Origin: Carpediemonas membranifera BICM
Taxonomy: Eukaryota; Protista; Fornicata
Length of the DNA stretch: 64,000 nucleotides
Assembly: GCA_019828565.1 (NCBI GenBank)
Contig: JAHDYR010000043.1
Location: 28,512 to 92,511 of the forward strand
Reading direction: 5' to 3'
Under the pieces are notes generated by a model. That model was not told the origin of the DNA. It made no database searches and saw only the letters and a program-made list of their open reading frames with translations. Below, piece by piece: positions 304 to 49,645 of this stretch. The position numbers and the translations under genes were made by a program. How positions within the stretch are numbered: position 1 is the stretch's first letter; each line of letters opens with the position of its first letter.

Positions 304-616
304 TGGCGCTACATCGTCAGTAAGGTTACCTCGGGTAACGGGCCCGGAGCGGAGGGCGATGTGATAGCCTCACTCCGGGCAAAAGGTGTTTCGCCGGTCA
401 GGCGAGTCACGCAGTTTATGCGGACAGAATGGCGCAAAGTTCGGATCCGCCGGATCCGACGGCACGGTACCAGTTACGACTGGTATACTCCCTCTCCCTC
501 GGTAAGCGGAGAGGACTTCGCGTTTAACTTACACTAGCTTCCTCGTTAACATTGTGTAAATTAAGCGCCCCCCCGTTGGTTAATGAAAAGAATGTCATGA
601 GGCTAGGATAGCTAGC
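304..616 (+). mobile_element. YR-1: solo A-C-B remnant of a YR retrotransposon (same family as YR-5)
   Basis: 304-463 is near-identical to the 5' repeat at 22522-22682 and is followed directly by a hairpin module, a C-run and a B-type end (GCTAGgatagCTAGC). No ORFs. Confidence 0.8.
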
Positions 617-16425: not shown

Positions 16426-19400
16426 GGGTAGTACCCCAGCTCATTGTCGCAAGGGCGACGGGACGTGGGCGAGGCCGGCAATCGCCGGATGCCCGCGTCA
16501 TTGGTCAAGATTGGTCGGCGCAGTTTATGCGGCCAGATGACGAACGATTCGCAGCCGGTGGCTGCGACGGCCGAGGAAGTGGCAGAACTGCGTACCACGG
16601 TGCAGGAGATGCAGAAAGCTCAGGAGAGATCCACCAAGATCCTCGAGAGGATGGCCGCCGCAAGCGCCGAATCTGAAGCGGATTTCCACGAGGAACTGGC
16701 GTTTGAAGAAGATGAACAAGACCCCATCATGGCTTCCCTTTCATACATTGAGGCCATGACCGAGCTGCCGAAGAAGCGCCCTCTTCTGGAGGAGGCGAAG
16801 TTCCTTCGGAAGGTTCAAACGATCCTCACCTCTTCTACAGACACGAAACTCCTCAAGCGTCTTTCCCCCCTCCTCTCCGCCCGGCGTAGAGCTCTGATGA
16901 TGAAGGATGAAGATTACAACGACGTCACAGTCACCTACTTTCAGAACCAGGTATGGAAGGCCATCGCGGACAAAGGAACCCTCGACGAGTCCCAGATCGA
17001 GTCCTTCGAGCTCAAGTCTAAGATTCACGGAGCCAAGCGAAAGGGCGACAAGTTTCAGCCTCCGGGAGGCGGGGGCCGAGGCGGCAGCTCTCGCGGTCGC
17101 AACCGGCAGTCAAACTAACCGAGAACCACCTCTTCCCATCGATAACTGGCGACGTGTGGCGACTCTGGGAGCGCTTCGGCGCCTCAGAGCACGTCGTCAG
17201 CCTACTCAGAGACGGCGTTCCAATATCACTGACCGCGCCTCCGTCGGCGGCCGCAGAAAGAAAGAAAGAAATTTATGGTGCTTGGATTCTGACCCCGGAC
17301 TGAGCTTGTTTCCCGTTGTCTTGGAGCTGAGTGCCCCGGGGTACTGCCTATTTCCCGTGGCAAACTGGTCAGCAGCGTTTGCCTTGGGCTTTCGGTGCTA
17401 CTGTCTCCGCGGAAAGCCGATTCCAATCGCCCCAGAGGCCCTGCGGCCATCTCCGTGCAAATATGCTTTCCTGTCTCCCTGAAAGTCCGGCAACTATCCG
17501 GGGAGCCTGGGGGTCTGTCCTCGGGGCATTGACAGGCAGGATCGTCCTGCAGAACCTTGACTATGACACTCCTTGCTTCCCTGCAGTCCTTGTAGAGCCG
17601 TTCAGCCACGGCACCCTCTCGTCTGTCCGGTTCCCCAATTCCATGCCCCCTCGACTCTGTTAAGAAGCCTACCCGAAGGCGGGGAAAGTGACTAAGTCCA
17701 TGCTGTCTACCCCGGTTAGGTGGCGTGGGTCAGGGCATGGGTGGTGTACCCCCAGGCGCTGGGCCTGGTTGTCCTGTTACCCCTTACAACATTTCGCTTG
17801 CACTACATGTCCTTGGTTTCCCATGTCGTTAACAAGGGCGGCAGGGGCACCTGTGCCCCTCCGACCCCCGTGGCCAGTCCCTGCAGTTTCCTTGGGGTCC
17901 CAACGAGTGGTGCAACCATATGAATATGGATTTCCTTGACCTTGTCCTTGCTCTGTCCTTGTCGCATGTCCTTTCTTCCATAATTCTGATCTGTCCTTCC
18001 CTGTTCTTTCCTTGCAATCGTTCCTTCCCTTGCTTTGGTTCCTGGCTAACGGGATACGTGGGGCCTTTTCTCACTGATCCCCGGAGCTTTGCGCCCAGCG
18101 AGGGTGGTCCATGGCTGCTTCCTTGTCCATCCCTTCCCGGTCCTGGAGTCAGGGGTTCATGACATGCTTCTATTCCACCTTGAAGCTGTTGTAAACCTTT
18201 GCCAGTTCCCGTAGTCCTGCCGTGAGGCCTTCCCAAATGTCCTCCGAGCCCCATATTATTAGTTGCTGTAATTCTAGGATGGGTCTTTCCTGGTACCATT
18301 CGCCCTGGGGGCCCTGCCTTACTTCCAAGTCCTTAGTTTTGTGCTTCGCTGCTGTCCACAGCTTTGTCCAAGCTTCTCCCCTGTCTACTGCCGGGCATTC
18401 ACAGATTATGTGCGCTGCCGATCCTAGCCTCTGGCCCTCTGCCCACTCCCTGATCATTTCCTGCTTCCTTGCTGGTCCTGGCTTTTTCCCTAATGATCCT
18501 GTAGAACAGGCTCACCTCCGACTCCTCCGAGCATAGGGGGCATAGTCTGCTAATTTCTCTCTTTAGGTCAGCGCCTTGGGCCAGCTCTGTGATGGCTCTC
18601 ATAGGGCCCTCCCCTCTCTCTGCCGACGATGGGGATGGGCTGACATTGGCTGCAATGGATACAATTCTCTTCCATTCCGCCCTGCTTTGCCCCTTCCCAG
18701 CCTTTCGGTCTACCGTAGGCTTACCTTGCAGACACTTGCTTAATTTCCTTGTCCCCATGATTTCCATTAGTCCTAGTGCCGTACGGCTTTTGCACCGCTT
18801 CATCCACCCCCTCCTGATCGTTTCCATGCCATAATCCAGTAGCGCTGGTTTGGGGGCTCCCTCTCTGGTGCCCTCCAGTAGATGCTGCACTCTCTCCCTA
18901 GCTTCCCACATAACCGTGCCTCGCCCCCATTCTCTGTTTCTGACTGGTATATCCTGGTCCCTGTAGTTGACTATCCTTTTGACTGCCAGCCATTCCATGT
19001 GTGCCTGGAGGTCCACCCATCCATTCATCAGCCTCATGGCTGCGCCCCCTCCCGGTCCTGTTCCTGCCATGATTCCCTGCCAGTCATTCCAGATCCTTCT
19101 ACCTCCCGGTGCGTTCCCCCACACCTCGACTCCGAAGAGGATCCTGGGCCATATATATATTTCCAGTAGTAGCCTGCTCGCTAGTGCTGGCATGTTTGCC
19201 CTGGTCCACCCTGCCCATCTCACCAGTCTCTTGTACCTTTCGCTCTGCTCCTGTTTCCGCCTTATGCAGGCCGACATAGGGTCCTTCCCACTTGCGATCC
19301 ATAATCCCAGGTATCTCGCCTCTCGGCGGCCGCACCACAGACGCGACTGGACCCACGTGTTCGGGCCAAGCTCCAACAGCTGTTGAACGAGGGCATTCTC

Positions 19401-22400
19401 CGCAGAACGACCCTGCAGTCCCTCCGCCATTCGGCCCCGATCTTCCCTGTTTCGAAAGGCTCGGACGACATCCGAGTAATACACGACCTCCGAGAACTCA
19501 ACACCGTGACGGAGGAGACCCGAGTCTTCCGCCTCTTCGGCATCAAACGTGCTTTGGCGACGCTCACGGCCGGGGACTGGATGACGAAGATCGACCTCCG
19601 CTCGGGGTACTCTCAAGTCCCAGTCAGGGAGCAGGACAGGACACTTCTGGGCGTGGTCACTCCGGAGGGCGAGGCATTCTGCTACACTGGACTCCCCTTC
19701 GGTTGAACCGCGGCTCCGTTCTACTTTCAGACAATAACCATCCAGGCCGCAAAGATCATCGCCAGGCGCCTCCAGATCCACGTTTGCGTGTATCTAGACG
19801 ACTTCCTCCTATCGTCTGCGCGCAAGGAGCACCTGGCATGGGCAACACACGAGGCCCTCGAGCTCATGCGCTCCCTCGGCCTCATTCCGGGGCTGGACAA
19901 GTGTATTCTTCAGCCTACACGCTGCTTGGAGTACCTCGGCCTCCTCATCAATACGGAAAACACTTCAGTGCGCCTTTCCAGCGACAAGGCGCGCAAGTAT
20001 CAGCAGACGTTGATATCCGCGTTGGAGAGCGACTCCATCAGCGCCGTCGACTACTCCAAGATCCTAGGGCGTCTCTCCTTCTTCGCTTCCGCAGCGCATG
20101 CAGCACAGCTCAAGCTGCGGCCGTTGCAAGCAAGACAGCCGAGAGGCAGAGTACCTTTGGATGCAGCCCTCAAGCAAGAGCTCGCCCAGTGGGTCTCACT
20201 GCTGCAGCAGCGCCCAGCCAAGTCATTTATCGAGCTCAGGGCCCTCTGGGACATGACAGGCTCCCTGGAGATGACAGTGGCGTCCGACGCATCCAGCTTC
20301 GGCTGGGGGCCAGAGTATACCTCGGAGAGAACAACAGATCGGCGCATGGGCACTTCCCCCCGCACATAGTGAACGCCCACATCTGCACAAAGGAGCTTTT
20401 CGCAGTCGTTCGGGGCATCGAACTCATCTCTCCACAGCCGCAGGTGCGCACCCTGACATTTTTCTGCGACAACTCGGCCGTAGTCTCGTGGGTCAACAAG
20501 GGCGGATCGACAAGAGCAGACCAGACAGTCATGAGCCTACTCCACGAGCTGCAACAACACCTCGACAGCAGAAACCTCGTGGCTCGATGTCTTCACATCG
20601 CAGGACACCTCAACGTGGAGCCGGACAGGCTGAGCCGGTTCATGAAGCTCGAGTGGTCGACCCCGCGTTCAGTCCTCGAGCGAATCCAGCGCAACTGGGG
20701 ACCAGTGCAGGTCGACGCGACCGCCGCTCCCACTCGCCGCTTGGCCCTCCCAGGATTCGCTCAGCACGGATGGACTCTCGCAGAACACGGCCTGTCTCGG
20801 GACTGGACGGGGATGAGAGTCTTCGCAGCTCCTCCAGTAGCGATGATTCCAGCGACATATCTGCATATTCGGACGATTCGGTCGCCGACCCAGACTGGAT
20901 CCCCTCAGACGTGGAGGTCAGCTGCGATAATAGTGACTCCGGACATCCCGTCACCAGAACTCCGCCGCTTGCTAGCCCTCTCATCAGTTCCCAAGATGTA
21001 CTTCAGAGTGAACCAAGATCTTCTGTCGGACTCCGAGCTGTCGCGGCTGGCCGAGAGGGGCAGGATAAGGCTCATCGCGATGATCATCAGGACTTCGAGT
21101 TCCTCCTCCACCACGACAGGCTCTCACATCTGAGCCTAGAGGCGTCACGCAGGGCAGTCGCGGGCTACCTCGTCAAGTTCAACGCGTCGAGAGACACCAC
21201 GCTATCACACGCGGCGCAGCTCAGGCAGCACCTCATGAGCGAAGCCAAGACCTCGGGGCCCGACACGATCGGCAAGAAGGGACACTGGATTTGCAAAGCG
21301 GCCCCACTGATCTGCGACTGGACCCCCCGCAGGACAGCAGCGAGATCATCCGATCAGTCCGCAACGTAGCATCCACCACCAGACTGACTGGCGGGGCTCG
21401 ACCGGTGACGAGCGACATAATCCGGTCGGGTTTCCGACGTTGGAAACAAGATCCGAAGACGTTCCAGGCGGTCTTGTTCGCCGCACTCTGCTTCCAAACT
21501 GTCAGCCGCGGCAAGGAAATCTTCACTCTGACGAGGGGAGACGTGACGTTCAGCCCAGAGGGCGACGCGACGCTGTTCATGGCACGCACCAAGACTACCA
21601 CAGCGGTGAAGAAGCTCGTGGTCAACGCCACCTTTGACTCATTCAACATCGCGAAGGCGCTCCAGCTTTGGGTCAACTTGGCCACGAAGCGCGACACGGA
21701 TTCACTATGGAGGAAGGTCAACGGAGACACGATCAGCAAGACAGAGGGGCTGTCAGAAGGCGCAATGAGGCGCTGGATCGCAGCAGTGTTTGGCGACTCC
21801 GTCACTTGGCACAGCTTCAGAAAGGGCGCGGCGACCGAGCTCGCCGTCGCCGGCACTCCTGAGCACGTGCTGATGGCACTGGGGAACTGGCGCTCCGCGA
21901 AGAGCCTGCTGGCGTACACCGGCAATGGCATCCGCCAGCACCCCGCGGTCCAGAGAGACATCGCCAGGTCTCTTTTGGGCAAGCCACTGTAAACATTCGA
22001 TGGGATGTTTATGGTGCAGGCTGTTGCGACCTCACGGGAGGTGACAGCTAGGAGTTAATGATATCTCCTCGGCCGGCGGGACAACCCCGTTGGATCTACG
22101 GAGTGTAGAGGGTCAGGTGGCCCGCGAGTCGGGCGGGTAGTACCCCAGCTCATTGTCGCAAGGGCGACGGGACGTGGGCGAGGCCGGCAATCGCCGGATG
22201 CCCGCGTCATTGGTCAAGATTGGTCGGCGCAGTTTATGCGGCCAGATGACGAACGATTCGCAGCCGGTGGCTGTAAGAACGCGCTCGGGAGAGCGTCCCT
22301 CGTCGGTACGCGAGGGAAACCCAAGACTTACTTAGGAGCCGAAGGCGCGTAAGTCTTCGAATATTGACGCGGCGAAACAGGGGTTTCTTGCGTAAATATT

Positions 22401-22490
22401 CTTTCCCCCGTTGGATCTACGGAGTGTAGAGGGTCAGGTGGCCCGTTGGATCTACGGAGTGTAGAGGGTCAGGTGGCCCGCGAGTCGGGC
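16426..22490 (+). mobile_element. YR-4: complete split-direct-repeat YR retrotransposon interrupted by LINE copy 2
   Basis: A1 16426-16564 = A2 22135-22273 (139 bp); B1 22085-22134, B2 ~22405-22490; gag 16537-17118; pol 17115-17255 + 19335-21133; YR to 21992. Confidence 0.93.
17256..19322 (-). mobile_element. LINE copy 2, 5'-truncated
   Basis: 12-bp TSD TCGGCGGCCGCA at 17244-17255 and 19323-19334; (GAAA)n on plus strand. Confidence 0.95.
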
Positions 22491-25624: not shown

Positions 25625-26489
25625 TGACCGATACCCCCGTCACATGACGCTACACGGCCCTGAGACCCCCCAGAACCCAAGTACTACCTCGATCTCGCCC
25701 CGCGAAGCCTCGACTGCTGAGTACCACTCGAGCCCATTGGCACTCGGGGTGCTGAGACGCCCGAGAGGGCGCACGGAAACGTGCAGTTTATGGCATCAGA
25801 ATTTCGAATGCCCGAAGGCACATCGGGCACGTCCGCAGAACCTCCTGTATCCCAGGAAGAGTTCCGAAAGTTTACCAACAACGTAACTGCCACATTGGAG
25901 TTCATGAAAACGAAGATGGAGAACATCGAGGAAAGATCCATCCAGAGGGAGGTAGAACAAGAAGAGTACGAGCTAGAAACCGATGAGCAAGCAACCCAGG
26001 GAACCTTCCAAGGCCTTCCGTCCTTCTTGTTCGATTTGGAGCTCCCCAAGAGGTACGGGCCCCGCGACGAAGCCAAGTTCCTACGCGAGATCATGCGTCT
26101 CCTGACGACCGCGGACCCGCACTCACTCGACGTGAACGATCTACTGCTCCGTCTCCTGAGCCGGTTCAAGGTCCTTCTCCTCAAGGACGACTACGACGAC
26201 AACGTCTGTGACTACGCCACTGCAGCCCTGCGAGCCACGCCCCCGAAGTCTGAGATGGAGATCGAGACGATCCTCGCTAAGGCCAAGACTAAGGGCAAGC
26301 GTAAGCGTCGGAATTTTCAGGAGCAGGGCTCCAGCAGCGTCGGCCGCCGGGCCCGCTCCTAATATTCCCATCAACCCGTTCGCGATGGCGGGTGTGGGAA
26401 CAATTCAGGGTAGCTCCAGCAGTAGTAGCGCGGGTACGAGACGGAATCCCCGTCGAGATCACAGCGCCTCCACCACCGGCAGCCCCACA

Positions 26490-28005
26490 GAAAGAAAGAA
26501 AGAAAGAAATTTATGGTGCTTGGATTCTGACCCCGGACTGAGCTTGTTTCCCGTTGTCTTGGAGCTGAGTGCCCCGGGGTACTGCCTATTTCCCGTGGCA
26601 AACTGGTCAGCAGCGTTTGCCTTGGGCTTTCGGTGCTACTGTCTCCGCGGAAAGCCGATTCCAATCGCCCCAGAGGCCCTGCGGCCATCTCCGTGCAAAT
26701 ATGCTTTCCTGTCTCCCTGAAAGTCCGGCAACTATCCGGGGAGCCTGGGGGTCTGTCCTCGGGGCATTGACAGGCAGGATCGTCCTGCAGAACCTTGACT
26801 ATGACACTCCTTGCTTCCCTGCAGTCCTTGTAGAGCCGTTCAGCCACGGCACCCTCTCGTCTGTCCGGTTCCCCAATTCCATGCCCCCTCGACTCTGTTA
26901 AGAAGCCTACCCGAAGGCGGGGAAAGTGACTAAGTCCATGCTGTCTACCCCGGTTAGGTGGCGTGGGTCAGCGGCAGCCCCAGGCACTAGGCCTGGTTGT
27001 CCTGTTACCCCTTACAACATTTCGCTTGCACTACATGTCCTTGGTTTCCCATGTCGTTAACAAGGGCGGCAGGGGCACCTGTGCCCCTCCGACCCCCGTG
27101 GCCAGTCCCTGCAGTTTCCTTGGGGTCCCAACGAGTGGTGCAACCATATGAATATGGATTTCCTTGACCTTATCCTTGCTCTGTCCTTGTTGCATGTCCT
27201 TTCTTTCTTATTTCTGATCTGTCCTTCCCTGTTCTTTTCCTTGCAGTCGTTCCTTCCCTTGCTTTGGTTCCTGGCTACCGGGATACGTGGGGCCTTTCCT
27301 CACTGATCCCAGGAGCTTAGCACCAGCGAGGGTGGTCCATGGCTGATTCCTTGTCCATCCCTTCCCGGTCCTGGAGTCAGGGGTTCATGACATGCTTCTA
27401 TTCCACCTTGAAGCTGTTGTAAACCTTTGCCAGTTCCCGTAGTCCTGCCGTGAGGCCTTCCCAAATGTCCTCCGAGCCCCATATTATTAGTTGCTGTAAT
27501 TCTAGGATGGGTCTTTCCTGGTACCATTCGCCCTGGGGGCCCTGCCTTACTTCCAAGTCCTTAGTTTTGTGCTTCGCTGCTGTCCACAGCTTTGTCCAAG
27601 CTTCTCCCCTGTCTACTGCCGGGCATTCACAGATTATGTGCGCTGCCGATCCTAGCCTCTGGCCCTCTGCCCACTCCCCTGATCATTTCCTGCTTCCTTG
27701 CTGGTCCTGGCTTTTCCCTAATGATCCTGTAGAACAGGCTCACCTCCGACTCCTCCGAGCATAGGGGGCATAGTCTGCTAATTTCTCTCTTCAGGTCAGC
27801 GCCTTGGGCCAGCTCTGTGATGGCTCTCATAGGGCCCTCCCCTCTCTCTGCCGACGATGGGGATGGGCTGACATTGGCTGCAATGGATACAATTCTCTTC
27901 CATTCCGCCCTGCTTTGCCCCTTCCCAGCCTTTCGGTCTACCGTAGGCTTACCTTGCAGACACTTGCTTAATTTCCTTGTCCCCATGATTTCCATTAGTC
28001 CTAGT
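26490..28005 (-). mobile_element. LINE copy 3, 5'-truncated
   Basis: TSD CCGGCAGCCCCACA(GA) at 26476-26491 and 28006-28021. Confidence 0.95.
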
Positions 28006-29077
28006 CCGGCAGCCCCACAGAGGACCATCGACCCGAGGATACTTCCGAAGCTCGAATCAATGACACAACAAGGAATCATCGAGCCGACGCCCCTCAGTCA
28101 GCTCAAGCACAGCGCCCCGCTGTTTGCTGTCCCCAAGGGGGAAGACATAAGAGTGATCCACGACCTGAGGCGGCTGAACACGGTCACACGCGAACGCCGC
28201 TCCTTCCGTCTGTTCGGCATACGTCGTGCCATCAACACACTCTCCAGCCAGGCCTGGATGGCCAAGATAGACCTAAGATCCGGCTACTCACAGCTGGCCA
28301 TCAGAGACTCGGACAAACCGCTCCTGGGCATCGCTCTGCCCGACGGTCGGGCGTTCCAATACCGCACGCTAGGCTTCGGTTGGACCGCCGCGCCTTATTT
28401 CTTCCAGTCCGCTATGGTCCAGGTAGCAAAGGTCATCGCCCTCCGCCACAAGGTAATCGTCAACGTCTACCTCGACGACTTCTTACTGTCAGCCGACAGC
28501 AGAGACCACCTCAGCAAGGAAATACCCAAGATCATCAAGACGATGGAGGCACTGGGCCTCATCCCGTCGCTGGAGAAGTGCATCTTAACACCGTGCCAGT
28601 GCATAGAATTCCTTGGCCTGCTCCTGAACACCACGTCCAACACCATCCGTCTCCCCGCCGACAAGGCCAAGAGGTACGCAGAGGCCCTATCAGAAGCACT
28701 CGTCAAGAAGCGCATCCGCGCGAAAGACTGGGCGAAGATCGTAGGCAAGCTCTCCTTCTTCGCCACCTCTGCAAGACGGGCTACCCTGAAGCTCCGCACG
28801 CTCCCTTCTGCCACGGAGAACTGGGTCGACATCCACCCCTACACAGCAGACCTCAAGGAGTGGCTGCAGCTCCTGGCCGTCCGACCAACCCGCTCCTTCG
28901 CCGAGTTGAAGAACCTATGGTCTCAGGACCAGCAACTAGAGCTGATTATTTCCACAGATGCGTCGGGCACAGGCTGGGGAGCCCAGTGGACCAACACGTC
29001 CGCGAACTCCCACGGTTCTTTCAAGGGCGCACTGGCGGAACAATCTATCAACGTGAAGGAGCTCGCCGCAGTCCTCT

Positions 29078-30655
29078 TTGGCTCACGCATCATACCAGCA
29101 CAGGACTCAGAGCGCAATCTCACGGTCTTCTCAGACAACAGCTCGTGCGTCGCCTGGATCAACAAGGAGGGCAGCTCAAAGGCCCCCCGATGGCGCTACA
29201 GACACTCAGGATACTCTACAAGGAGATGGAACGCAAGAAGCTCCTCATACACGCTCGACACACCCCAGGCCACCTCAATCTCGCCGCAGACCGACTGTCA
29301 CGCGGGTTGTCCACCCCACCCCACGTGCTGGAGACAATTCTCGAGACTTGGGGCCCCGTCGACGTGGACGCTACAGCACACCCAGACCGCACTCTACGCC
29401 TCCCAGGGTTTACCATCGAACACTGGCCGGACGGCCTGTTCAGGGACTGGCGCGGACACCGCGTTTATGCCGCGCCACACCCGTCCCCGATGACCTTGGG
29501 ACGGACATGGCAGACCCTCCTACCGATCTTAACGACCCCGACTACATCCCCTCCGAACTCGTGGACCTCAGCATGCTTCCTCGTCGTGCCAGACATTACG
29601 AGCCCCGAACTCCAACAACTCAAGGCGCACGCGACATGCAAGATTCCCTTCTCAGTACCGAAAGACGACTTCGCATCAGAGGACCAACAACTCCTAGACC
29701 GTCTCTCCAGGCCAAACGGGACCATCCGCTTCATAGCTCTCGCCTTCAGGACACGTTCTCCAGAATCCTGCAGCACCCAATACTGTCTCACATGCGCCGA
29801 GACGAGTCCAAGCGCTCAGTAGCCGGATGGATTACAGCATTCCTTGAGTACCGCGACCCACACGAGGACGACACCGATGAGTACCGAGCCTTCCTGGAGG
29901 ACGAGGCCGAGTATAATGCACCAGCCACGGTCGATCGAAAGGGATACTGGATCGAGAAGGCCGCCCCACTCTTTTCCGACTGGACCCCCAGCACCTACTG
30001 TCCACAAATCAGAAGAGGCATAGCAGACAACGCCAACACCACCGGCATGACAGGCGGGTCAGCCCCAGTCACAAGGGAGGACATGATCAGGGCCATCAAG
30101 TCCAGGAACAGCGACATCGCGACGTACCAAGCGACACTATTCGCCGCGATTGCTTACCTGACCGTGAGCCGCGGAGCTGAAATCTTCAACCTGACGAGCG
30201 CTGACATCGTGTTCAAGGCAAACGGGGACGCCCAGCTGCTCCTTGGTCGCACAAAGACGCTTGCAAAGGTCACTAAGTCACTACCCAACACCCTACTAGG
30301 CCCATTCAACCCAGCGCTGGCCCTGAAGAGATGGGTACGAGGCTTGAACCTTCCACCGGACGCCTGCATCTGGCGCGCGATCACATCCTCATCGAAGGTC
30401 AGCCGTAAGACCCCGTGCACAATGCGACGTATGCGAGAGGAGCTACGCACAGTCTTCCACGACAACAGGATTGGCCTACACAGCTTCCGCAAGGGAGCGG
30501 CTTCCGAACTGGCACTAGCAGGCACACCGATAGAGACCTTACTCCAACTCGGAACCTGGGCTAACGGCAACTCTCTCCGGCCTTACATCGGGGAGGCTAT
30601 CCGCAACCACCCTCGTCAAACCCGACAAACTGCAAACACCCTGTTCCCATTCTAA
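29078..30655 (+). CDS. YR-7 tyrosine recombinase (true start downstream of ORF start)
   Basis: VSRGAEI, RTKT, HSFRKG, GTW, RPY. Confidence 0.88.
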   Translation: MAHASYQHRTQSAISRSSQTTARASPGSTRRAAQRPPDGATDTQDTLQGDGTQEAPHTRSTHPRPPQSRRRPTVTRVVHPTPRAGDNSRDLGPRRRGRYSTPRPHSTPPRVYHRTLAGRPVQGLARTPRLCRATPVPDDLGTDMADPPTDLNDPDYIPSELVDLSMLPRRARHYEPRTPTTQGARDMQDSLLSTERRLRIRGPTTPRPSLQAKRDHPLHSSRLQDTFSRILQHPILSHMRRDESKRSVAGWITAFLEYRDPHEDDTDEYRAFLEDEAEYNAPATVDRKGYWIEKAAPLFSDWTPSTYCPQIRRGIADNANTTGMTGGSAPVTREDMIRAIKSRNSDIATYQATLFAAIAYLTVSRGAEIFNLTSADIVFKANGDAQLLLGRTKTLAKVTKSLPNTLLGPFNPALALKRWVRGLNLPPDACIWRAITSSSKVSRKTPCTMRRMREELRTVFHDNRIGLHSFRKGAASELALAGTPIETLLQLGTWANGNSLRPYIGEAIRNHPRQTRQTANTLFPF

Positions 30656-31056
30656 CACCATAAACCATCGCACCGGAGGCCGTCAAGGAGACGCCCGGTC
30701 CAGCCGAAAGCAGCAAGGAGCTGCTGGCACTTGAGGCAGGCATGGAGCCGCCATACTCCACTGTAATTACTCTACTTACCTCAGATCTGCGGACGGTGTT
30801 CCCCTTTGGGAGTATGAGTTAGGTGGCTAGCCTAGTCTAGCGAGTACCACTCGAGCCCATTGGCACCCGGGGTGCTGAGACGCCCGAGAGGGCGCACGGA
30901 AACGTGCAGTTTATGGCATCAGAATTTCGAATGCCCGAAGGCACATCGGGCCTAAAGGAGCCCGAGAAGAATAAATCCTTTACCCCCCCCTTTGGGAGTA
31001 TGAGTTAGGTGGCTAGCCTAGTCTAGCACCCTCAATCTCAAGATCTAGTAAAAGGA

Positions 31057-31130: not shown

Positions 31131-31236
31131 TTTTGAGACGTCAGCTCCGGCGTGAGATAATGGAGCATGGGCGATGGATCTGCCTGATTCGATTTATTCG
31201 AGCCGAACGAATCGGGATCGAATCAATTACGGCCAG

Positions 31237-31668
31237 ATGGCTGAAGAAACCGAGAACAACACCGGGGACCGCACGCCTGAAGCAGAGAAGATCCCAGATC
31301 CGCAGAAGCGCATCAACGAACTAACAGGCGAGTTATTGACGCTTCGAGATTTAATGTCGCTGGAGTGGCGCCACCCGGACTCACTAGCCATGCGTAACGA
31401 GTCCGAATGGCTGCAGATGCTCTACAGGGACATCGTCCTCCACCCGAGCTGGACAACCGAGACGATCAAGCTTCAGCTAATGCTCCGTCATGAGCTTCTC
31501 CTCATTAAGGACATCAATGGCTTTCACTACGCCGACGCAGTCAAGGACTACGTCAGAGCCCGACGTTCCAGGATCCGTGATTCCGAGAGCCTCACCGTCC
31601 TCATCGCAGAGGCCCGCTCCAGTGCCAGAGTCGCCCCCAAGAGCGATAAGCGCCCCAGAAAAAACTAA
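31237..31668 (+). CDS. YR-8 gag-like protein
   Basis: ATG in the CAGATG context shared by the families; MRNESEWL...LLLIKD motif. Confidence 0.8.
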   Translation: MAEETENNTGDRTPEAEKIPDPQKRINELTGELLTLRDLMSLEWRHPDSLAMRNESEWLQMLYRDIVLHPSWTTETIKLQLMLRHELLLIKDINGFHYADAVKDYVRARRSRIRDSESLTVLIAEARSSARVAPKSDKRPRKN

Positions 31669-33629
31669 TTGTGCAAGACCATCAATCAACCGAACCACCA
31701 CTCCCCACAACCCGTCGAGCGGGTTCTCTCCGCCACTCAGTGGCCGCGTGGCGGCGCTTGGGAGCGCCATCCGACGTGGTCTCTTGGGTTGGCGACGGCA
31801 TACCCATCGAACTGACACAACAACCGAGCAATCCTCGAATATTCCATCTCCCAGAGAAGGACTTAGCCAAGCTCGATCCGCTGGTGCGCGAAATGCTCTC
31901 ATCGGGTGCCATACACCGCGTCTCATCACCACCGAAGCTCACATGTCCTCTCTTTCCAGTCCCGAAGGGTACAGACAAATGGAGAGCAGTCCACAACCTC
32001 ATACCGCTCAACAAGGTCTCCAAAGAGCGCCGTACGTTCCGCTTGTTCGGTGCCAAGAGAGCAGTTTTAAGCCTTGCGCCAGGAGACATGATGATGTCGC
32101 TAGATCTCCATGCAGGCTACCACCACGTGTCCATTCACCCATCATCGCAGTCCCTCCTAGGCTTTATTCACCGCGGCGTCCACTATCAGTTCACAGTCCT
32201 CCCATTCGGATGGTCCGCGGCGCCATTCTACTTCCAGAAGATCATGATTACCGTAGCGAAGATTATCAAGCGCCATTGCCGCGGTGTAGGAGTTGCCGTC
32301 TATCTGGACGACCTTCTATTCTTCGGGAAGAAGAAGGCCCTTCTGCGCGAGCGCCAGCGCCTCCTGGACATCATGAATCAGCTAGGCTTTATCATCAACC
32401 ACGACAAGTCAGTCCTAGAGCCCACCACAGTCCTGACATACCTCGGCATGCGCATCGACTCAGCTGCTCGGGTCATTTCCCTAGACTCGAAGAAGCGCAG
32501 CAGATACCGCCAATTGGTCGAGAGTGCGCTGATAGAAGGCAATATGAGCAACAAGAGGTGGCAATCCCTCATCGGGAAGCTATCCTTCGCATCTCTGTGC
32601 TTCCCCGACGGCCGCGCATGGCTGAGACCTCTTCAGACAGCCACCGAGACGGAGAAAGGCTTTACGAAAGCCGTCCTCAAGGCCCTATCGTACTGGAAGC
32701 AACTGCTGAGCAGCGAAGATCATCCTCCCCGCTCCTTCGACTCCCTGATCAGCATGTGGGGCGCAAGCCCGGCAATCGACATCCACATCCAGTCGGACGC
32801 CTCAGAAAAGGGCTTAGCTGCCATTATCAGGGACGGCTGCAAGCAGACGATCGTATCCTCCTCCGTCTCCCCCAACAGCCCGCTCCAGAACGAGTCCATT
32901 GCGGTGAAAGAGTTCTTTGCGGCGACGAACGCCGTGGAGACGCTCCTTCCACATCTAACGGACAGGGAGATCACCGTATTCATCGACAACAGCAACGCCT
33001 GCGCCTGGTTGAACAAGCAGGGATCAACGCGAGCCCCGCCGATGATCCAGGACGCTTGTCTCACCCTCTTTTCCCGCTTGGCCGCCTGCCAGATCACACT
33101 GAGAGCCCAGCACGTCAGCGGGCACCTCAATGTCTCCGCAGATGCTCTGTCGAGATACCAGCGACTGGAATGGCGGACACCACGAGGGATCCTCGCTGCC
33201 ATACTGGAGGAGTGGGGCCCTCTCGAGGTCGACGTGACTGGTGGGAGGGACAAGGAGTTACTACTTCCCGGCTTCGTCGAGCGTTCGCTCACGCTGGCCG
33301 AGAGCGGCATGAGCTCGGAGTGGCGCAGCAAGAGAGTCTTCGCAGCACCACCATACGCCCTTCTTCCAGCCGTAGCCAACCGACTGGCCCTCATTCGCGC
33401 CTCACCAGCCTCACATCCGAGGCATACCAAGTCTGCAGTGGTCGTGGTGATGCCCGACGTCCAGTCCGAGGCGGTACGCCGCATCAAGGGCCTCTCCCCC
33501 TTCAAGAGAACGTTCAGGGTCTACGCGGAGGACATGAAGGACTCAGAGCTCCAGAACATCCTCGTGGGGGAAAAGCCGCGGCTCCTCGCCGTCTTCGTGC
33601 CGACGACGCCGCTTTCAACGCAGTACTAG
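31665..33629 (+). CDS. YR-8 RT-RNase H-MT-like polyprotein, intact, in -1 frame to gag
   Basis: SLDLHAGYHH, LPFGWSAAP, YLDD, SDAS, IDN, ADALSR, WGPLEVDVT, FAAPPY; no N-terminal ATG. Confidence 0.92.
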   Translation, partial: LIVQDHQSTEPPLPTTRRAGSLRHSVAAWRRLGAPSDVVSWVGDGIPIELTQQPSNPRIFHLPEKDLAKLDPLVREMLSSGAIHRVSSPPKLTCPLFPVPKGTDKWRAVHNLIPLNKVSKERRTFRLFGAKRAVLSLAPGDMMMSLDLHAGYHHVSIHPSSQSLLGFIHRGVHYQFTVLPFGWSAAPFYFQKIMITVAKIIKRHCRGVGVAVYLDDLLFFGKKKALLRERQRLLDIMNQLGFIINHDKSVLEPTTVLTYLGMRIDSAARVISLDSKKRSRYRQLVESALIEGNMSNKRWQSLIGKLSFASLCFPDGRAWLRPLQTATETEKGFTKAVLKALSYWKQLLSSEDHPPRSFDSLISMWGASPAIDIHIQSDASEKGLAAIIRDGCKQTIVSSSVSPNSPLQNESIAVKEFFAATNAVETLLPHLTDREITVFIDNSNACAWLNKQGSTRAPPMIQDACLTLFSRLAACQITLRAQHVSGHLNVSADALSRYQRLEWRTPRGILAAILEEWGPLEVDVTGGRDKELLLPGFVERSLTLAESGMSSEWRSKRVFAAPPYALLPAVANRLALIRASPASHPRHTKSAVVVVMPDVQSEAVRRIKGLSPFKRTFRVYAEDMKDSELQNILVGEKPRLLAVFVPTTPLSTQY

Positions 33630-34509
33630 GTCTAGACGAGCTCAAAGGCTACGTGGCAACGACCAGGCGTGACACGGCGGGTGTCGTCTCCCAGTTCCTG
33701 ACCTTCCGAGAGGCCAACCCGGCATCGGACCGCGACACATTCCTGGCGTGGCTCGCTCGCGAGGCTGAGCTAGTAGGCCCAGACCGTCTGGCGCACCGGG
33801 GCTCGCTGGTGGTAAGGTTTGCACCCCTGGTATCAACGTGGGCACCCCCAGCTGCTCAAAAGGCATTCATCACCGAAGCGAAGCGCGCTACAGTCCCCAG
33901 GCCGCAACGCAAGGTCCCAGTGCGGGCTGCACGCATCCACCGCCTGATCCCCAAACTCGCCGGCCGCGACGAGGAGTTCCACCAAGCCTTCTTATTCGGC
34001 GTCGTTGCCTACGCAACAATGTCGAGGCGCAGTGAGATCCTACCCCTCACTCCTCGGGATATCAGGGTGAAAGCAGGACTCGGCGTCTCTATCACCATCG
34101 ACTCCACCAAGACAGGGCTTCGCGCAGTTAAGAAGTTCATCCCGTGGGTCGAAGGCGCGCTCAATCCGGCAGGGATGCTCATGGCTCACCTGCAGCGCTG
34201 GTGCCAGGACAGAGACGCCACCATCTGGAAGTCCCCCAACCTCGATGGGTCGAGGCTGGACCGAGGGCCGTTGCCCCCGCTATGCTCCAAGACAAGCTGA
34301 AGCAGGTCTTTGGAGACCCAGTTGGATCCCATAGCTTCCGTCGCGGGGCCGCAGCGGACGCTGTACTTCGCGGAATGCCCACTCCAGTGGTCATGGCCCT
34401 CGGTACTTGGAAGTCCGAGAGTTCCCTCCAGAGCTACATCGCCGAAGCGGTGCGGCTCGACCAGGAGACAGCTGTGACGAGGTGCGAATGGTTCGCGCAC
34501 CTCGAATAG
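33560..34509 (+). pseudogene. YR-8 tyrosine recombinase (one frameshift near 34275; start approximate)
   Basis: MSRRSEI, STKT, HSFRRG, GTW, QSY. Confidence 0.85.
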
Positions 34510-34808
34510 CAGTCGTCTCCTTCCTTTACTCGTACGGGTACGAGTGGTCCATAAAGATTGAATGGTCACCATCGGGATGGTGTAGGCGTGCGGGCGGGAA
34601 GCCCCAGGAGAATTCATAAGTGAATGTGAGTGTCTGCCTAGTCAGACGAGACGTCAGCTCCGGCGTGAGATAATGGAGCATGGGCGATGGATCTGCCTGA
34701 TTCGATTTATTCGAGCCGAACGAATCGGGATCGAATCAATTACGGCCAGATGGCTGAAGAAACCGAGAACAACACCGGGGACCGCAAATCGCAAAATCCC
34801 GAAAGCGC

Positions 34809-34883
34809 TCCAGCCGTAGCTCAGATGGTTAGGCCCCCAGCCTGAGAGACGGAGGGTCGCGGGTTCGATTCCAGTTGGGGTCA
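34809..34883 (+). promoter_or_regulatory. tRNA-derived Pol III promoter (A and B boxes) inside the C region of YR-8
   Basis: A box TAGCTCAGATGG 34817-34828; B box GGTTCGATTCC 34862-34872; stems degenerate. Confidence 0.7.
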
Positions 34884-35162
34884 GACATTCCACAAGCTCA
34901 GTGGAAACAAAACAAAAGGAGCAATAACGCGAGACGTACTCAGGTCCGGCGAGTTAACAGGACGTTGAGGGAAGAGCCGAAGCCAAAGTGGGCTAGGCAA
35001 TGAAGCCATGGAACCCGTGACCCAGGGGTCCTCTTGACACCACGACGTTTTACAGTCCGCGGGACCGCGGGCACAGGGAACATTACGCGACGAATCATGT
35101 AAATGTTCCGCCCCCCAGGAGAATTCATAAGTGAATGTGAGTGTCTGCCTAGTCAGACGGCA

Positions 35163-36919
35163 AGGCCAGCGGAGCCAAAACTTCGGCGCGAGAGGTCGAG
35201 GATGATTCGATACGATCTCAAAGACGGGATCGTGCGTCTCATAAGGGCGGTTCAGTTGTTCAAGAGCGAACTGAAACAGATGGGAGACGCCGCCCAAGAG
35301 ATCGCAGAGCTCAAAGCCACCGTTCAACAGCTTCAAGACGCATTTACTGCCGGCGGCAACGTCCGAGAGACAGTAGATCTGCTTCGGCAAGAGACCACCA
35401 TGACTTGGAAGCGTCCTGCTTCATCCACTATGCGCGAAGAGGCGGAGTTCCTCGAGGAGATCTACCGCAGCTTCAAGTTCAATCGAATCAGTGGCTTCGC
35501 CGTACTCGCTCGCATCTTCCTCCGTCACCGAGTCCTATGGGTGAAGGACCGCTACGGCTACCTAGCCGCCTCTGCTGTCTCCACCGCGGGCATGGCCGCC
35601 CTTGCCGAGCGCCACGAGATGAACGAGACGGAGATCGAGACTCTCGTCCTCCGCACCCTGTCCAAGATCCCCCGCCTGACCGAGAAGAACACCAAGCCCG
35701 GCACCGGACATGACGGCGGCAACCGGGGTTTTCACGGGAAGAAGCCGAAGCGCGCCGGCACGAAGAACTCAAACTAAGTCAAAAGAAACCACCCATCAAG
35801 GATCCTCGCCCCGGTCCACAGGTCCTAACTCCTCATCCAACCACAAATCCCACTACTCCTCAATCTCCTCCCCTGTCACCGACGCCTCCTCCTCCCCCGT
35901 CCACAGCACCTCCTCCCCCGTCAGTTCCACCATTTCCCTGCATCAACAGGCAGTGGCGCCTATGGAGGCACTTGGGCGCGCCATCAGAGGTGGTTACGTG
36001 GCTACGCGAGGGCGTCCCGATATCCCTAAGAGCGCACCCTCGTCATCCGCGCCTACCACCAACTCGCGCCAAGGACCGCAAGGCATTCCGCGACCACCTG
36101 AAAACCCTCCTGAGCCTGGGCGCGGCAAGCCCATGCCGGTCTCCCAGCTTGATCTCACCTATCTTCACTGTGCCGAAGACGCCACCAGAGACGCGTCTGA
36201 TCCACGACCTAAGGGCATTGAACGCAGTGTCAACGGAACATCGAACCTTTCGGCTGAAGGGAGTCAAGCAAGCGATGGCCCAGCTTCGCGAAGGAGACTA
36301 CATGGCACGCTTGGACCTAGTCAAGGGCTACTACCAGTTAGGGGTCAGGGCCTCGGACAGCCCGCTGCTGGGTTTCTTGGTCGACGGGAGACCCTATGCC
36401 TTCAACGTCCTACCCTTCGGCTGGGGCCCAGCGCCATTCTTCTTCCAAAGGGTGATGCTGACAGCAGCGCAGATCGTAGCACGGATGTTCCCAGGCATCA
36501 ACTTGACCATCTATCTCGACGACTGGCTCCTGTCCGGGGACAAGAAGACACTGACCGCTGCGATGCCCGGCATACTACAGCTCCTAGAGAACCTCGGCCT
36601 GGTCATCAACAGGAAGAAATCGCAGCTCTCACCCACGCAGCAGACCGACTTCCTTGGCTTCGTCATGGACTCTGGCCGGCGGGGGATCGCTCTGCAGGAC
36701 AGCAAGCGGCAGAAGTACCTCTCACGAGTCAGGGAGGCCTTGGCATCGGGGGCCTTCCTTCGGAGGGTGACGCTCGGCATTACGTAAGGTCGAGCGAGGT
36801 AATTTACTCCGGCTTACACAGAGATAGACCCGGGACGATGCGAGAACGCGACACAATAAATTACCTACCCCCCCCCTGTGGGAATGGACGGAGTCTACCG
36901 GATCGTCAGCCTGTCTGAC
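35163..36919 (+). mobile_element. YR-9: internally deleted YR retrotransposon (A1, gag 35280-35777, RT to ~36750, then C-B)
   Basis: RLDLVKGYYQ, LPFGWGPAP, YLDD; RT fused directly to hairpin module, C-run and B end; closest to YR-11. Confidence 0.88.
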
Positions 36920-38016: not shown

Positions 38017-38253
38017 GCAGACACTCCGGTAGACTCTGTCTACACTCCCAGAGGGGGGGAAACGAATTTATAGTGCTCTCGCCCATGCTAGTGTAAGCTA
38101 AATTCGTCTCTCCGGGACCCTCTTACTTGTTGGCCTTGTTGGTTCATCAATAGATTATTTAATAGTCTTGAGTCGTCCAGCTCGACACATGGGTGTCGAG
38201 CTCTATTCTTTGTAAAGCTTTGTTCTCACGAACCCACAGTAACGTTACTTACA

Positions 38254-39106
38254 ATGACTGAGGACAAGGGTCCGTTATGTACTCAACCAGAGATTAATGC
38301 TCTGCTTTCGTTTAAGGAGAAACTCGATCGCCATGTCCGAACGGGCGGAAAACGCCGACTTATCAAGCGTTTGGGTCCGGCTGTCACCTCATACTGTGCA
38401 GCAGTTGGTATAGACGTAGCCAAGACATACAAGAGCGCGAAGCACAACACAGTGACGGGCGAGAAGCGTAAGAAACATGAGAGAGAGGACCTCGTTTTTC
38501 AGAGCGATTGCTAACGCAATTAAGCCCACTGATCCGATCCTAGAGCGCCGTCTTTTCCAGCTAACGACCCAGGGTATTGACGTGGGACGTCTCTCACTCT
38601 ATGCCGACAGATTCATCAGCCGCAAGGCCGTCTTGGCTCCCTCTTTCTCCGACGCCGTGATGCGCAGCATGTTCGTGAAGGGAATCCAGGACGAGGACCT
38701 CCGTAGGGAAGTCAAGGAGGCGGCTACAGGGCTTGACCTTAACAGCACCATCCAGGTCGCTCTCCAGACGTGCAAGCGTCTCCAAGAGGCTGCGATGATT
38801 ACTTCCAGGACCATCAAGTCCGATTCTCAGCCTCGAAACCGCCCTCCTAAGGACCAGCGCGCAAGCCATTCTCGAGGTCTGCGCCGACAGGGCGGCCCGC
38901 CTCACCCGGGTGAGCACCAGTCTCATGGCAAGCACCAGTACCGGGGAGCCCAGTCTGAAATGCAGAGAAGTCAGCAGACCGGCTCAAGCACCGATCATCA
39001 GAGCACCAGCCGTACCATCGTGTGCTACAACTGCGGCAAGTCCGGTCACACATCGCGCCAGTGTCGGAACCCGAAGACTGTCTGCAGCAAGTGCGGTAAG
39101 CAGGGA
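38254..39106 (+). pseudogene. Chromovirus-1 gag (frameshift near 38495; second CCHC knuckle split by the LINE)
   Basis: CYNCGKSGHTSRQC and CSKCGKQG|HQDKFC continuing at 43572. Confidence 0.88.
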
Positions 39107-42100: not shown

Positions 42101-43557
42101 TTTCCGTCCCTGCCCCTCCATGTCTTCCAGGTGGGTTCCCTGCCTCTGCTGACTCTAGCATACTGTTGCAAGAGGATCTCGCTGATGGCCGCCTTGTCCG
42201 TGGTTATCACTCCGTCCTTGAGGAGGCTCTCCGGCATTCCCTTGTATTGGTTGTCACACCACCACCTTCTGATGGCAGCTTCCACTGAGGCCCTTGAGGC
42301 CCTATACCCCCTTTTTGCACTTCTGCTGATGTCGGCCACCCATTTGGCCCTGCGCTCTCCCCAGTATTTCTCCAGCTCCTCTTTCATCCTTTCCTTCCTG
42401 GTCCTGTTGCCTATTTCTGTCCATGGGGTTCGCTGGAGTTCGCTCCACACTCCGTTCCCGAACACTTTGTCCCTTGCCTTTGCTCCCCTGTTGTTCACTG
42501 GGTCGCCCATGCATGCTCTTATAGTCTCTTCCCATTGGTCCGAGCTCTTGATCCTGTTCAGCTTTGAGACTGTGACTGGCCCCTCCTTCTTTTTCATGGG
42601 CCAGGTGTGCACCTCGGGTATGGCCAGAGCCACGTCTCGCTCACTTCTGCCATAGTACCGTTGTTCCTTCCATGCTAGTGTGATTCCATTGTGTGCTGAG
42701 CCCCATACCCCGACCTTCTGAGACTCTACCACCTCAATCTCCGCCCCCTGGATTCCTGGTGTTGTCACTGCAAAGTCCGGGGTTGATGTTCCTGATGTGA
42801 GCGTCCCAGACTTGGGTATGATGGCTTTGAGCCTGTGCTTCTCCATCATATCCTTCCACCGGGTGGATCTTTCCATGGCCTGGGTCGATGTTCCAGTCTC
42901 CCATAATTATGGCCTCCATGCTCCCTTTCATGTCCATGATCTTCTGTATAGTGTCCCTGAATCCATCCTTCTCCTGCTTGCTGTGGCCGGATGGAGGGCC
43001 ATACACGTTGATGACTAGTATGTCCCTGCCGGTTCTCATTATGCTGGCTTGCACTCTTCCCGATAGGCTGTCCGTTATGCCGATGTCCCACTTTGCAGTT
43101 GCGTGTGGGCTCACTATCGTGCCGATGCCTTCCCTTGTTCCCTTCCATCTTGGCGCAGGTTCGTCATTGCCTGCTATGCCTAGTTGTCGGTTGATGCGGT
43201 GCTGACTTTTGACATCCGCCTTTCGTTTTTCGTTGGCTAAGACCAGGTCCTCTTCCGTCTCCCTCCCTGCTAGTGCGTAGTCAAGGTCCATGAAGCAATG
43301 AACCCTCGTATTCGCCGTTCTCCATGTCTCTTGTATGAGTACTGCCTCTATGTCCTTCAACCTTAGCTGAATCGCCGTTGCCATAGACGCCGTGAAGTCC
43401 TTTCCTCTTCCTATGTGTCCCTCTGTGTTCAGACTAAGTATCTTGTAGGTTACCATTGCCTTTGTCCTGTTTCCTTATCCTGCGAATTCCCAGAATTTGG
43501 GAGCCCCAGCTTCCCGCTCCTCTCCTGCTATCCTTGTCCTAACAAGGGGCCTAGATG
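39105..43557 (-). mobile_element. LINE copy 4, truncated just upstream of ORF2 (ORF2 40015-43456, frameshifted)
   Basis: TSD GCGGTAAGCAGG(GA) at 39093-39106 and 43558-43571. Confidence 0.95.
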
Positions 43558-47415: not shown

Positions 47416-49645
47416 GAGCTGTGATCGTCTAGAAAGTCGACTTTCCAGAAAGCAAAAAATGCGAAATCGATGAAACGCAATGGTTACGCAACAATGCTGT
47501 TCAGAAGTGGAACATAGAGTTGTTTACATGGTGGAACTGATGTTGTTATTCAATATAGCCGCGTTTTCGGGATCCAAAAAGTGTTTCCGGCGGTGCAAAA
47601 CGAAAAAGTGCCATATCTCGCGAACGAGAAGGAATTGGAGCCTCTTAACCCGTTTTTTGAACGCCGTGTAAGATTAGGCGGAATGTAACCAACCTCTGGT
47701 AAGAATTGACATGGGGACATCGATGGCACCTAAAAGTGCGCCATTTGACCCTTTCAGAATCGTCGGGTATGTTTCAAAGACTTTCAAGAGGGGCAGGACC
47801 CCAGGTAAGGATACCCATAACATAGCGCGCTAATACAGTGGTACCACGCAAGATTTGATCAGATAATATTAGGTAATTTAGATTTGGTAGTGAGGTAAGC
47901 ATATCTCAGAAACGTGACTGGACATCACGCCGGGCATAAGACACAGGGTTTTTATAGCCAGTCTGGTCAACGGGTATCCGGTGAACTCGAAAGTCCCGAG
48001 CTCACAACGGTTCAGGCAATAGGGCTTAGTCCATTGCCAACTCCGGCTCCATGGCGAGTCCCCATGGAAGCGACGGTTACTGGAGCTTGTATCTGGGCAA
48101 TTCACCCGGACCAAGCACCTAGCACACCCTTCATAATAGTGTTGAGTTTTTTGATGCTCTACCGGAGCATGGGAGGGAAGTGTTGGTTCATCAATAGATT
48201 ATTTAATAGTCTTGAGTCGTCCAGCTCGACACATGGGTGTCGAGCTCTATTCTTTGTAAAGCTTTGTTCTCACGAACCCACAGCCTCGGCCAGAGTCCCG
48301 GAGTCACCCCGTCCTTCGGGGGATAGGCAGCCGTGGCTGCTGTGCGGTTCATCTGCATAGTATTCTTGCCTTTCTTCGAACTGGCCAGGATTGATCTGAC
48401 TCTGATTCGACCTAAGAGCCAGCATCAATAAGACCTCGACCGCTCAGCCGAAGATCGTCCGGTGCCTCCGCTCACCTTCAACGCGCTCCGCACGAGCCTA
48501 ACAGGCCACACAAACAAAACACAACAGGATGTTTAAAGCGGGCATCGGCGTTCTTCGGATGAGTGACGAGAATGAACTCGTCAAACGTAAAAGTGCTCGA
48601 GGACGCATGGTCCCCGAGCCGCCGCCGCCCACCGTGGGAGATCCAAGGGTGGATCCCCACCGGGTTGTGATTGGCGCGGCCACACCCGGACCACGCATGT
48701 CCGGACGCGACCGGGCCGTACGGTCAGTCTGACTGGGCAGACGGTCCGGTAGACTACGTCTATATCCCATAGGGGGGGGAGAAGAGTTTATTATCGATTG
48801 TGTGTTCTAGTGTAAGTAGTAAACTCCTCTCACCAGGGCCCGCTTACCTCGGCCGTGTTGGCCGGGACCCCGGAGTCACTCCCGTTCGGGAGGATAGCAG
48901 CCCACCGGCTGCGTCGCGGTTCATGCTTGCCATTCTTTGCTCTCTTTGTTGTAACGATGCGCTAATTTATTTCGACACACTGGTGTCGTCTCGGACCAAG
49001 TAGGACCAAGACGACACCCATAAAATATATAAATATTAATACGGTATTGCGACACTACCCCTCCCCCCCACCGAGAGTATTAAAGCCACTTTGCAAATTG
49101 TGTCAGAAACCCATCCGATGGTCGAGGATCTTCCTTCAGGGTGGAACCGGGTTCGACCCCCGGAGTCACCATATTTTTCATTGAATGGGTCTTAACCTGC
49201 ACGACCCAGCGATGAGTCGAAAAGAAGGAGGAGGCGAAGGACGGAAAAAAATGGAAAGGGTGTACTCGATATGCCCTTGCAGCGGCCTACCTCCACCTCC
49301 TGTCTGAGGTCTGAGTACCTCGTGTGGTGGCCGAAACACGAGTCGATGGCGAAAGAGTGAACGGGGAAGATGATCGCAACGAGAGCTGAACCCGAGGGAA
49401 ATGGGGAGATATATAAAGGTGATTGTACTGCTGTAGCACTAGGTTCTCACGGGCATTGGTTCCCCCGCAATGCGCAAAAATTTGGAATCAATCGACTATC
49501 GATTAACTGGGGAGGTTTGGACCGAAATTCCCCGCAAAAGAGGTGTAACAAGCATGTGTAGAGCGATATTGGGCGGAATAATTACTTCCTGGGGGGTAAT
49601 TGAGCATAATTGGCTGCTCGCCGATTGAGTTGCCTAATACTGCGG

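Follow-up and report, generated by a model that had tools for sequence, protein, structure and literature searches.

We found that the unique noncoding C segment of a group of tyrosine-recombinase (YR) retrotransposons in Carpediemonas membranifera is made up entirely of a conserved, covarying, and structured cis module of three hairpins (H1, H2, and H3), a conclusion that is supported by folding and by partner-permutation tests across families; this hairpin structure is new for the element class. Judged from the letters of the module and their match to host signals, the C segment has, in our estimation, an even chance of being a structured mini-intron followed by a poly(A)-signal hairpin, with the element RNA ending near a terminal run of C residues (the C-run). 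The DNA under study (the window) is a 64,000-nt stretch of contig JAHDYR010000043.1 (forward strand, positions 28,512 to 92,511), and unprefixed coordinates below refer to it.

Organization of the Elements and Their C Segments

The window consists of stacked retroelements around two tRNA-Met genes. Direct reading of the elements gave the split-direct-repeat layout A1-ORFs-CCCC/B1-A2-C-Cn/B2, and the repeat order A1 ... B1-A2 ... B2 was met in the families F5 (16426-22490), F12 (25706-31040), and F13 (31135-35158). In the full F5 element, A1 (16426-16564), which contains the ATG of ORF1, is followed by the ORFs, CCCC plus B1, A2, C, the C-run, and B2. The element ORFs carry RVT_1 (4e-20 and 1e-8) and Phage_integrase (5e-9 and 7e-8) domains; therefore, by repeat layout and domain content, these are PAT/Ngaro-type split-direct-repeat YR retrotransposons. 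What the original prediction had called the C region is the entire unique stretch bounded by A2, the internal repeat, and B2, the terminal one, and it holds nothing but the H1-H2-H3 module, with H1 beginning 1-6 nt past the end of A2 and H3 stopping 0-3 pyrimidines before the C-run. The YR1 module at 464-575 sits in a short solo A-C-B unit, and because B1 was present within 1.5 kb upstream in just 3 of the 16 YR1 copies examined, most copies are such solo units. All three hairpins and the C-run were found at the four sites where they had been predicted (in YR1, F2, F3, and F4), and a fifth instance was recognized in F5 (22274-22409). The further claim that some families retain at least the terminal stem and C-run also held: two additional families, F12 (30948-30991) and F13 (35077-35116), have only these. 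The sites are as follows.

464..574, + strand: YR1 C segment; A at 294-463, B2 at 575-616; about 20 near-identical copies genome-wide
467-486, 491-514, and 520-568, + strand: YR1 hairpins H1, H2 (GTAAG 502-506 in the loop), and H3
528-537, 556-561, and 568-574, + strand: YR1 box CTTACACTAG within H3, RTAAAY core GTAAAT, and C-run
22274..22409, + strand: F5 C segment of the full element; B1 at about 22085-22133 after CCCC, A2 at 22135-22273; 12 copies
22281-22296, 22297-22316, and 22359-22401, + strand: F5 hairpins H1, H2 (GTACG 22306-22310 in the loop), and H3
22323-22357, + strand: F5 box hairpin; CTTAC 22327-22331 paired to GTAAG 22349-22353
22392-22397 and 22405-22409, + strand: F5 GTAAAT and C-run
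36753..36876, + strand: F2 C segment; 13 copies
36753-36767, 36771-36796, and 36797-36866, + strand: F2 hairpins H1, H2 (GTAAG 36784-36788), and H3
36813-36821, 36856-36861, and 36868-36876, + strand: F2 box CTTACACAG, ATAAAT, and C9 run
38053..38135, - strand: F3 C segment, 3' part; GTAAG 38122-38126, box 38088-38097, H3 38056-38113
38066-38071 and 38053-38059, - strand: F3 ATAAAT and C-run
48283..48330, - strand: F3 C segment, 5' part (H1 and the H2 5' arm); an LTR element lies between both parts
48772..48894, - strand: F4 C segment; H1 48876-48894, H2 48833-48873 (GTAAG 48843-48847), H3 48779-48831
48807-48816, 48786-48791, and 48772-48779, - strand: F4 box, ATAAAC, and C-run
30948..30991, + strand: F12 minimal C segment; stem TAAAGGA/TCCTTTA and C8 run; at least 17 copies at 97-100% identity
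35077..35116, + strand: F13 terminal stem and C6 run; GTAAAT 35099-35104

The two parts of the F3 segment result from a 10-kb LTR retrotransposon (38137-48283) that splits the H2 loop a few bases before GTAAG; this insertion has 103-bp LTRs (38137-38239 and 48181-48283), TG...CA ends, and a 4-bp target duplication (AGGC), and an uninterrupted F3 copy elsewhere in the genome confirms the joined form. In F12, the C segment is only 31 nt long and lacks H1, H2, GTAAG, and CTTAC, with ATAAAT (30971-30976) at the border of loop and arm, and in F13 the terminal stem and C6 run form the end of a 320-nt C segment without splice-like boxes.

Several other features of these elements were recorded. The right end of F5 (22410-22490) is a partial tandem duplication of B, in which the first 35 nt are present twice and the second copy is complete. 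Within repeat A, about 10 nt upstream of the ORF1 ATG, most YR families have a conserved GCAGTTTATG-type motif (in the window at 410-440, 730-745, 16515-16535, 22215-22235, and 25785-25800), which could be a shared start-site or leader element. One F11 copy (L049 431-504) terminates about 70 nt from a tRNA gene. A part of the F13 C segment (34807-34883) gave no tRNA call by ARAGORN and scored below the Rfam gathering threshold for tRNA.

Families, Folding, and Covariation

Genome-wide searches covered 24,237,836 bases in 69 contigs, with a GC content of 0.53-0.60. Pattern searches identified at least 12 module-bearing families (YR1, F2/F2b, F3, F4, F5, F6, F7, F8, F9, F10, and F11), a collection that was partly assembled with patterns requiring the boxes described below and whose members all come from one genome and share ancestry. 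The composite pattern matched the genome 69 times, compared with a single match in the reversed control, and CTTACACNAG occurred three times in the window against 0.29 expected. When metagenomes were scanned with the pattern for relatives outside this genome, the 14 matches obtained were chance-like, none having an H2/H3 context.

Minimum free energy (MFE) folding produced all three hairpins in nearly every one of the 12 families, the exception being F10, with z values from -1.3 to -3.8; per-family shuffle tests were individually significant in only about half of the families. In scripted counts on arms that had been chosen as the best helices, the H2 arms were paired with their own partner in 72 of 72 cases, against a fraction of 0.58 after partners were permuted among lineages, and the H3 outer arm in 41 of 42, against 0.62. 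For neither helix did any of the 20,000 permutations match the observed pairing (0/20000). These results confirmed the earlier observation that stem sequences differ while pairing is kept, the arms being complementary only to the partner of their own family. MAFFT misaligned the whole modules, and an alignment of the H3 part matched the boxes and the TAAA core, not the 5' arms; in the H3 alignment of 14 families, TTAC, TAAA, and the C-run were the sole invariant columns. H3 with the C-run is the only part common to all 14 families.

Splice-Like Signals in H2 and H3

The loop of H2 carries GTAAG in 11 of the 12 families and GTACG in F5 (22306-22310), which contradicts the statement in the original prediction that GTAAG is always present; host introns begin with GTAAGT or GTAAGA, and the base preceding the element motif is G in 8 of the 12 families. 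A CTTAC-type box was found in all 12 module-bearing families: [CT]TTAC, a variable NN(N) (AC, TT, AT, CC, or GC), and an invariant CAG or TAG. A search for families lacking the AG, run without that requirement, found none, one decayed copy only. The box is located in the loop of H3 or at the end of its 5' arm. GTAAG in the H2 loop is best read as a putative 5' splice site, and [C/T]TTAC-N2-3-YAG as a putative branch point fused to the 3' splice site.

Read in this way, the putative introns of YR1, F2, F3, F4, F10, and F11 would be 36-45 nt long. In F6-F9, with the acceptor placed at the second box, they would be 66-72 nt long and contain an internal stem of 6-9 bp between the first box and GTAAGTC, which leaves 32-33 nt single-stranded. 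Wherever an intron is predicted, one arm of each of two hairpins would fall within it, the 3' one for H2 and the 5' one for H3. In C. membranifera introns, the branch point lies immediately next to the 3' end (PMC1201135), and the long introns of diplomonads and Trichomonas carry an internal stem leaving a short effective length (PMC6679479). A host intron in the assembly itself (locus L038) is 33 nt long (GTAAGT...AGCTTACATTAG), contains an in-frame TAG, and lies between two open frames; it was validated by homology, as the exon translations, searched and compared separately and never joined, matched adjoining stretches (residues 138-214 and 216-318) of a homologue 547 aa long. Its signals (GTAAGT...CTTACATTAG) are of the same kinds as the element boxes, in a host comparison set that is small; further host intron candidates are 31-32 nt long. 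The L038 gene itself (C54:1405900-1406500) belongs to a large family (83 library matches, the best 73% identical; no Pfam match on the two short exon pieces) and looks like a dihydropyrimidine or dihydroorotate dehydrogenase.

Some observations point against a splice reading. With the nearer 3' splice candidate, F5-F9 would have introns of 27-30 nt, shorter than any validated host intron, and F5 and one F7 copy have no second box. In addition, every element box has T at its third position (YTTAC), whereas two ORF-flanked but unvalidated host candidates read CTAAC, and this constancy leaves room for selection on complementarity to GTAAG. An ab initio scan for host introns over 120 kb was noisy in this GC-rich genome, its stricter version yielding the two plausible CTAAC introns. 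Genome-wide, GTAAG...CTTACNNNAG was not enriched, the forward count being lower than that of the reversed control; host introns are thus too rare for a signal to emerge. No intron interrupts the carbamate kinase gene in this assembly, and a supposed intron of INO1 (L037) failed validation because the upstream ATG is out of frame.

Short palindromes of the type (GGTAA)n-(TTACC)n were encountered at 19 genome sites compared with none in the reversed control, including L011 (C32:139066-139088), L032 (C39:159706-159736), and L036. At least two coincide precisely with the junctions of internal deletions in retroelements, among them a YR1 copy and an LTR element, and some have the form of an entire mini-intron of 31 nt.

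A Candidate Poly(A) Signal and the C-Run

The 3' arm of H3 contains RTAAAY in 12 of the 14 families, at a constant 5-7 nt ahead of the C-run. The same letters are enriched in the host: in 120 kb (C1:100001-220000), the top 5-mers after the stops of long ORFs were TAAAT (8.8-fold), TAAAC, GTAAA, and ATAAA (all four 6- to 9-fold). RTAAAY was present in 16 of 67 host flanks, with about 2.5 expected, mostly 10-30 nt past the stop, and TAAAY in 16 of the 37 that follow ORFs with 400 or more codons, with 5.5% expected; ATAAAC follows the carbamate kinase gene. RTAAAY, which is near the poly(A) signal types of Giardia and Trichomonas, is a candidate poly(A) signal of this organism, and the core of the H3 3' arm is best read as a putative copy of it. 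We also noted that TAAAC and TAAAT often include the stop codon itself, RTAAAY being enriched 0-30 nt after stops. No motif of the RTAAAY type precedes B1, and in F12, which has no intron signals, ATAAAT lies at the loop/arm border and not in the stem.

Host genes show no C-run past the poly(A) motif; thus, the C-run needs an element-specific role. B1 was preceded by exactly four C in nine of nine cases (three copies each of YR1 and F11, and F12, F5, and F13). B2 was preceded by 5-11 C, a count that varies among otherwise near-identical copies and comes from a nanopore-based assembly in which homopolymer lengths may be unreliable. An LTR-type polypurine tract, which the original prediction had read on the antisense strand, does not fit: the sense strand is a pyrimidine run, and the antisense G-run would lie 3' of repeat B, not 5'.

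Alternative Explanations for the Module

Three other explanations were weighed. In the first, the hairpins act in single-stranded DNA, where folded cDNA hairpins beside the B/A crossover site would serve second-strand priming or recombinase recognition, and the splice-like letters are incidental. Integron attC sites and the attachment site of phage CTX are recombination sites that act as folded single-stranded DNA. DNA hairpins would produce arm covariation just as well, and the only part shared by the 14 families, H3 and the C-run, lies 40-50 nt from the recombination junction. The antisense strand also folds about as stably as the sense strand, which was the more stable in only 7 of the 12 families, and DIRS-1 is amplified via a linear single-stranded cDNA (PMC7192593). 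On the sense strand, the MFE helices contain 45 G-U pairs against 4 A-C mismatches, a count that speaks for RNA but is biased in that direction by the sense-strand folding itself. A role in DNA gives no account of why the unpaired letters match a host 5' splice site, a branch/YAG motif, and a poly(A) motif, in this order, on the sense strand, and at host-like spacing, and we consider it unlikely.

A second explanation is a packaging or RT-recognition signal, in which U1/U2 snRNPs or proteins of the element occupy the splice-like letters but no productive splicing follows. It draws on the same structural evidence as the mini-intron reading, and it would agree with the finding that spliced genomic copies of YR1, F2, and F11 were absent when the genome was searched with exon-junction patterns (five matches to the F11 junction with three mismatches belonged to an unrelated repeat and were not spliced copies). 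A 5' splice site in a hairpin loop also resembles HIV-1 SL2, and U1 binding at the major splice donor of HIV-1 controls nearby polyadenylation. However, a 5' splice site, a branch point, and YAG at the spacing of host introns exceed what U1 binding needs, as does the internal stem by which the long forms are shortened to 32-33 nt, and F12 and F13 do without splice-like signals. This explanation, too, seems to us improbable.

The third is the model of the original prediction, in which the GUAAG loop of H2 and the CUUAC box of H3 form a pseudoknot or kissing complex for RT loading, self-priming, or ribozyme action. The two pentamers are exact complements in 10 of the 12 families, and the TTTAC box of F11 still permits a G-U pair; every box keeps YTTAC, whereas the two host candidates from a search that demanded no branch motif, both unvalidated, read CTAAC. 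GTAAG:CTTAC pairing is used locally in the 6- to 9-bp hairpins of F5-F9, with one compensatory change from G-C to A-T in F6b, and the priming of DIRS-type reverse transcription is unknown (PMC7192593). Although the pentamers are complementary in sequence, pairing between them is not supported. In F5, a family of 12 young and near-identical copies, GTACG faces an unchanged CTTAC without compensatory change, a central mismatch in a helix of 5 bp that flanking bases extend in none of the families, and the second GTAAG copy of F9 reads ATAAG. In many families, the last G of GTAAG forms the first pair of the H2 stem (loop NGGTAA), which leaves 4 nt free. The box is moreover already paired in half of the families: in YR1, H3 does enclose it as predicted (528-537) and pairs it within the stem, whereas in F5-F9 it lies outside H3 in a hairpin of its own with a second GTAAGTC. 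The pseudoknot also leaves the invariant YAG and the RTAAAY core unaccounted for, and F12 (at least 17 copies) and F13 are intact families without either box. The ribozyme version is not supported by Rfam, which returned only tRNA, both at gathering thresholds for the window and at E<=1 for the 12 loci. Long-range pairing is, in our view, quite improbable; the complementarity of GTAAG and CTTAC follows from the splice-signal consensus of the organism, and the same caution applies to similar finds in this genome. Overall, the original interpretation was partly supported.

None of the three accounts for the combined agreement with three host signals in order, strand, and spacing.

A Proposed Mechanism

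Under the mini-intron reading, we infer splicing and poly(A)-site use to proceed as follows. The folded H2 and H3 would tie the intron to exon sequence and bury the poly(A) signal, so that splicing would be disfavored and unspliced genomic RNA kept. Splicing, when it occurred, would remove the H2 3' arm and the H3 5' arm and free the poly(A) signal, and the resulting mRNA would be without the hairpins; such an mRNA would be unable to present them, which would explain the absence of spliced genomic copies of YR1, F2, and F11. The element RNA would end at or just after the C-run and leave B2 untranscribed, B2 would be rebuilt from B1 as a template that starts with the same CCCC, and the rebuilt junction would acquire a C-run of variable length. 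H3 and the C-run, which may have an RT-related role, would then be the universal core, and H1, H2, and the intron an accessory layer with which F12 and F13 dispense.

A bolder proposal is that the hairpins, splice signals, and poly(A) signal work together as a single RNA switch linking retrotransposition to the host spliceosome. The choice between mRNA and a template whose missing B2 is copied from B1 would depend on the making of a 3' end at the C-run, combined with either a transient GUAAG:CUUAC pairing or an intermediate made by the spliceosome (a cleaved 5' exon or lariat). We regard this switch as quite unlikely. If true, it would be the first defined cis mechanism by which split-direct-repeat YR elements start and finish reverse transcription; tyrosine-recombinase retrotransposons have, to our knowledge, had no cis-acting RNA element assigned to them so far. 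Even for DIRS-1, the primer and the transcript ends are open (PMC7192593). The split direct repeat would gain a concrete function if element transcripts indeed stop at the C-run, B1 then being the template for an untranscribed B2. The whole unique noncoding segment of at least 12 young families now offers a testable anatomy: a putative 5' splice site in a loop, a putative branch point and acceptor, a buried candidate poly(A) motif, and a C-run junction whose length is constant at B1 but varies at B2.

Comparison with Known Systems

Like the polypurine tract of LTR elements, the C-run is a homopolymer-rich tract that immediately precedes the 5' edge of the downstream repeat, and it is found at both B1 and B2. 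It differs in being pyrimidine on the RNA-sense strand, in having its antisense purines on the wrong side of B, and in being part of the repeat (CCCC at B1).

Penelope-like elements have genomic copies that retain a spliceosomal-type intron, and the genomic copies of the YR elements likewise keep their putative intron of this type. We know of no conserved hairpin wrapping of Penelope-like element introns, nor of their coupling to a poly(A) signal. In HIV-1, the SL2 loop contains the major splice donor, and the poly(A) hairpin encloses AAUAAA. The likeness is that of a retroelement RNA in which a hairpin loop presents a splice donor and a stem embeds a poly(A) signal, and in which folding can choose between processing and genomic RNA; HIV-1 is, however, of another element class and unrelated in sequence, and the YR signals stand at the 3' end, between A2 and B2, with the putative acceptor about 40 nt away.

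For the intron signals, the closest likeness is to the short introns of metamonads (Giardia, Spironucleus, Trichomonas, and the carbamate kinase introns of C. membranifera). These have the same extended GTA-type 5' splice site, the same merging of branch point and 3' splice site, with only a few nucleotides left before the AG (PMC1201135, PMC6679479), and the same uniform short length, which an internal stem restores in long introns (PMC6679479). Unlike them, the putative intron of the elements lies in a noncoding retrotransposon tail, and its ends are tied to the exons by the covarying H2 and H3.

DIRS-1 is likewise a tyrosine-recombinase retrotransposon. Descriptions of it are not known to include an intron or a poly(A) hairpin, and a 3' hairpin noted by Poulter and Goodwin was suggested as a primer, the real primer being unknown (PMC7192593). 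Nearly all of the right repeat is absent from its transcript, and an internal template serves to restore the ends that are lost (PMC7192593). DIRS-1 does so with inverted repeats and an ICR, whereas the elements described here have split direct repeats, in which B1-A2 would be the internal template.
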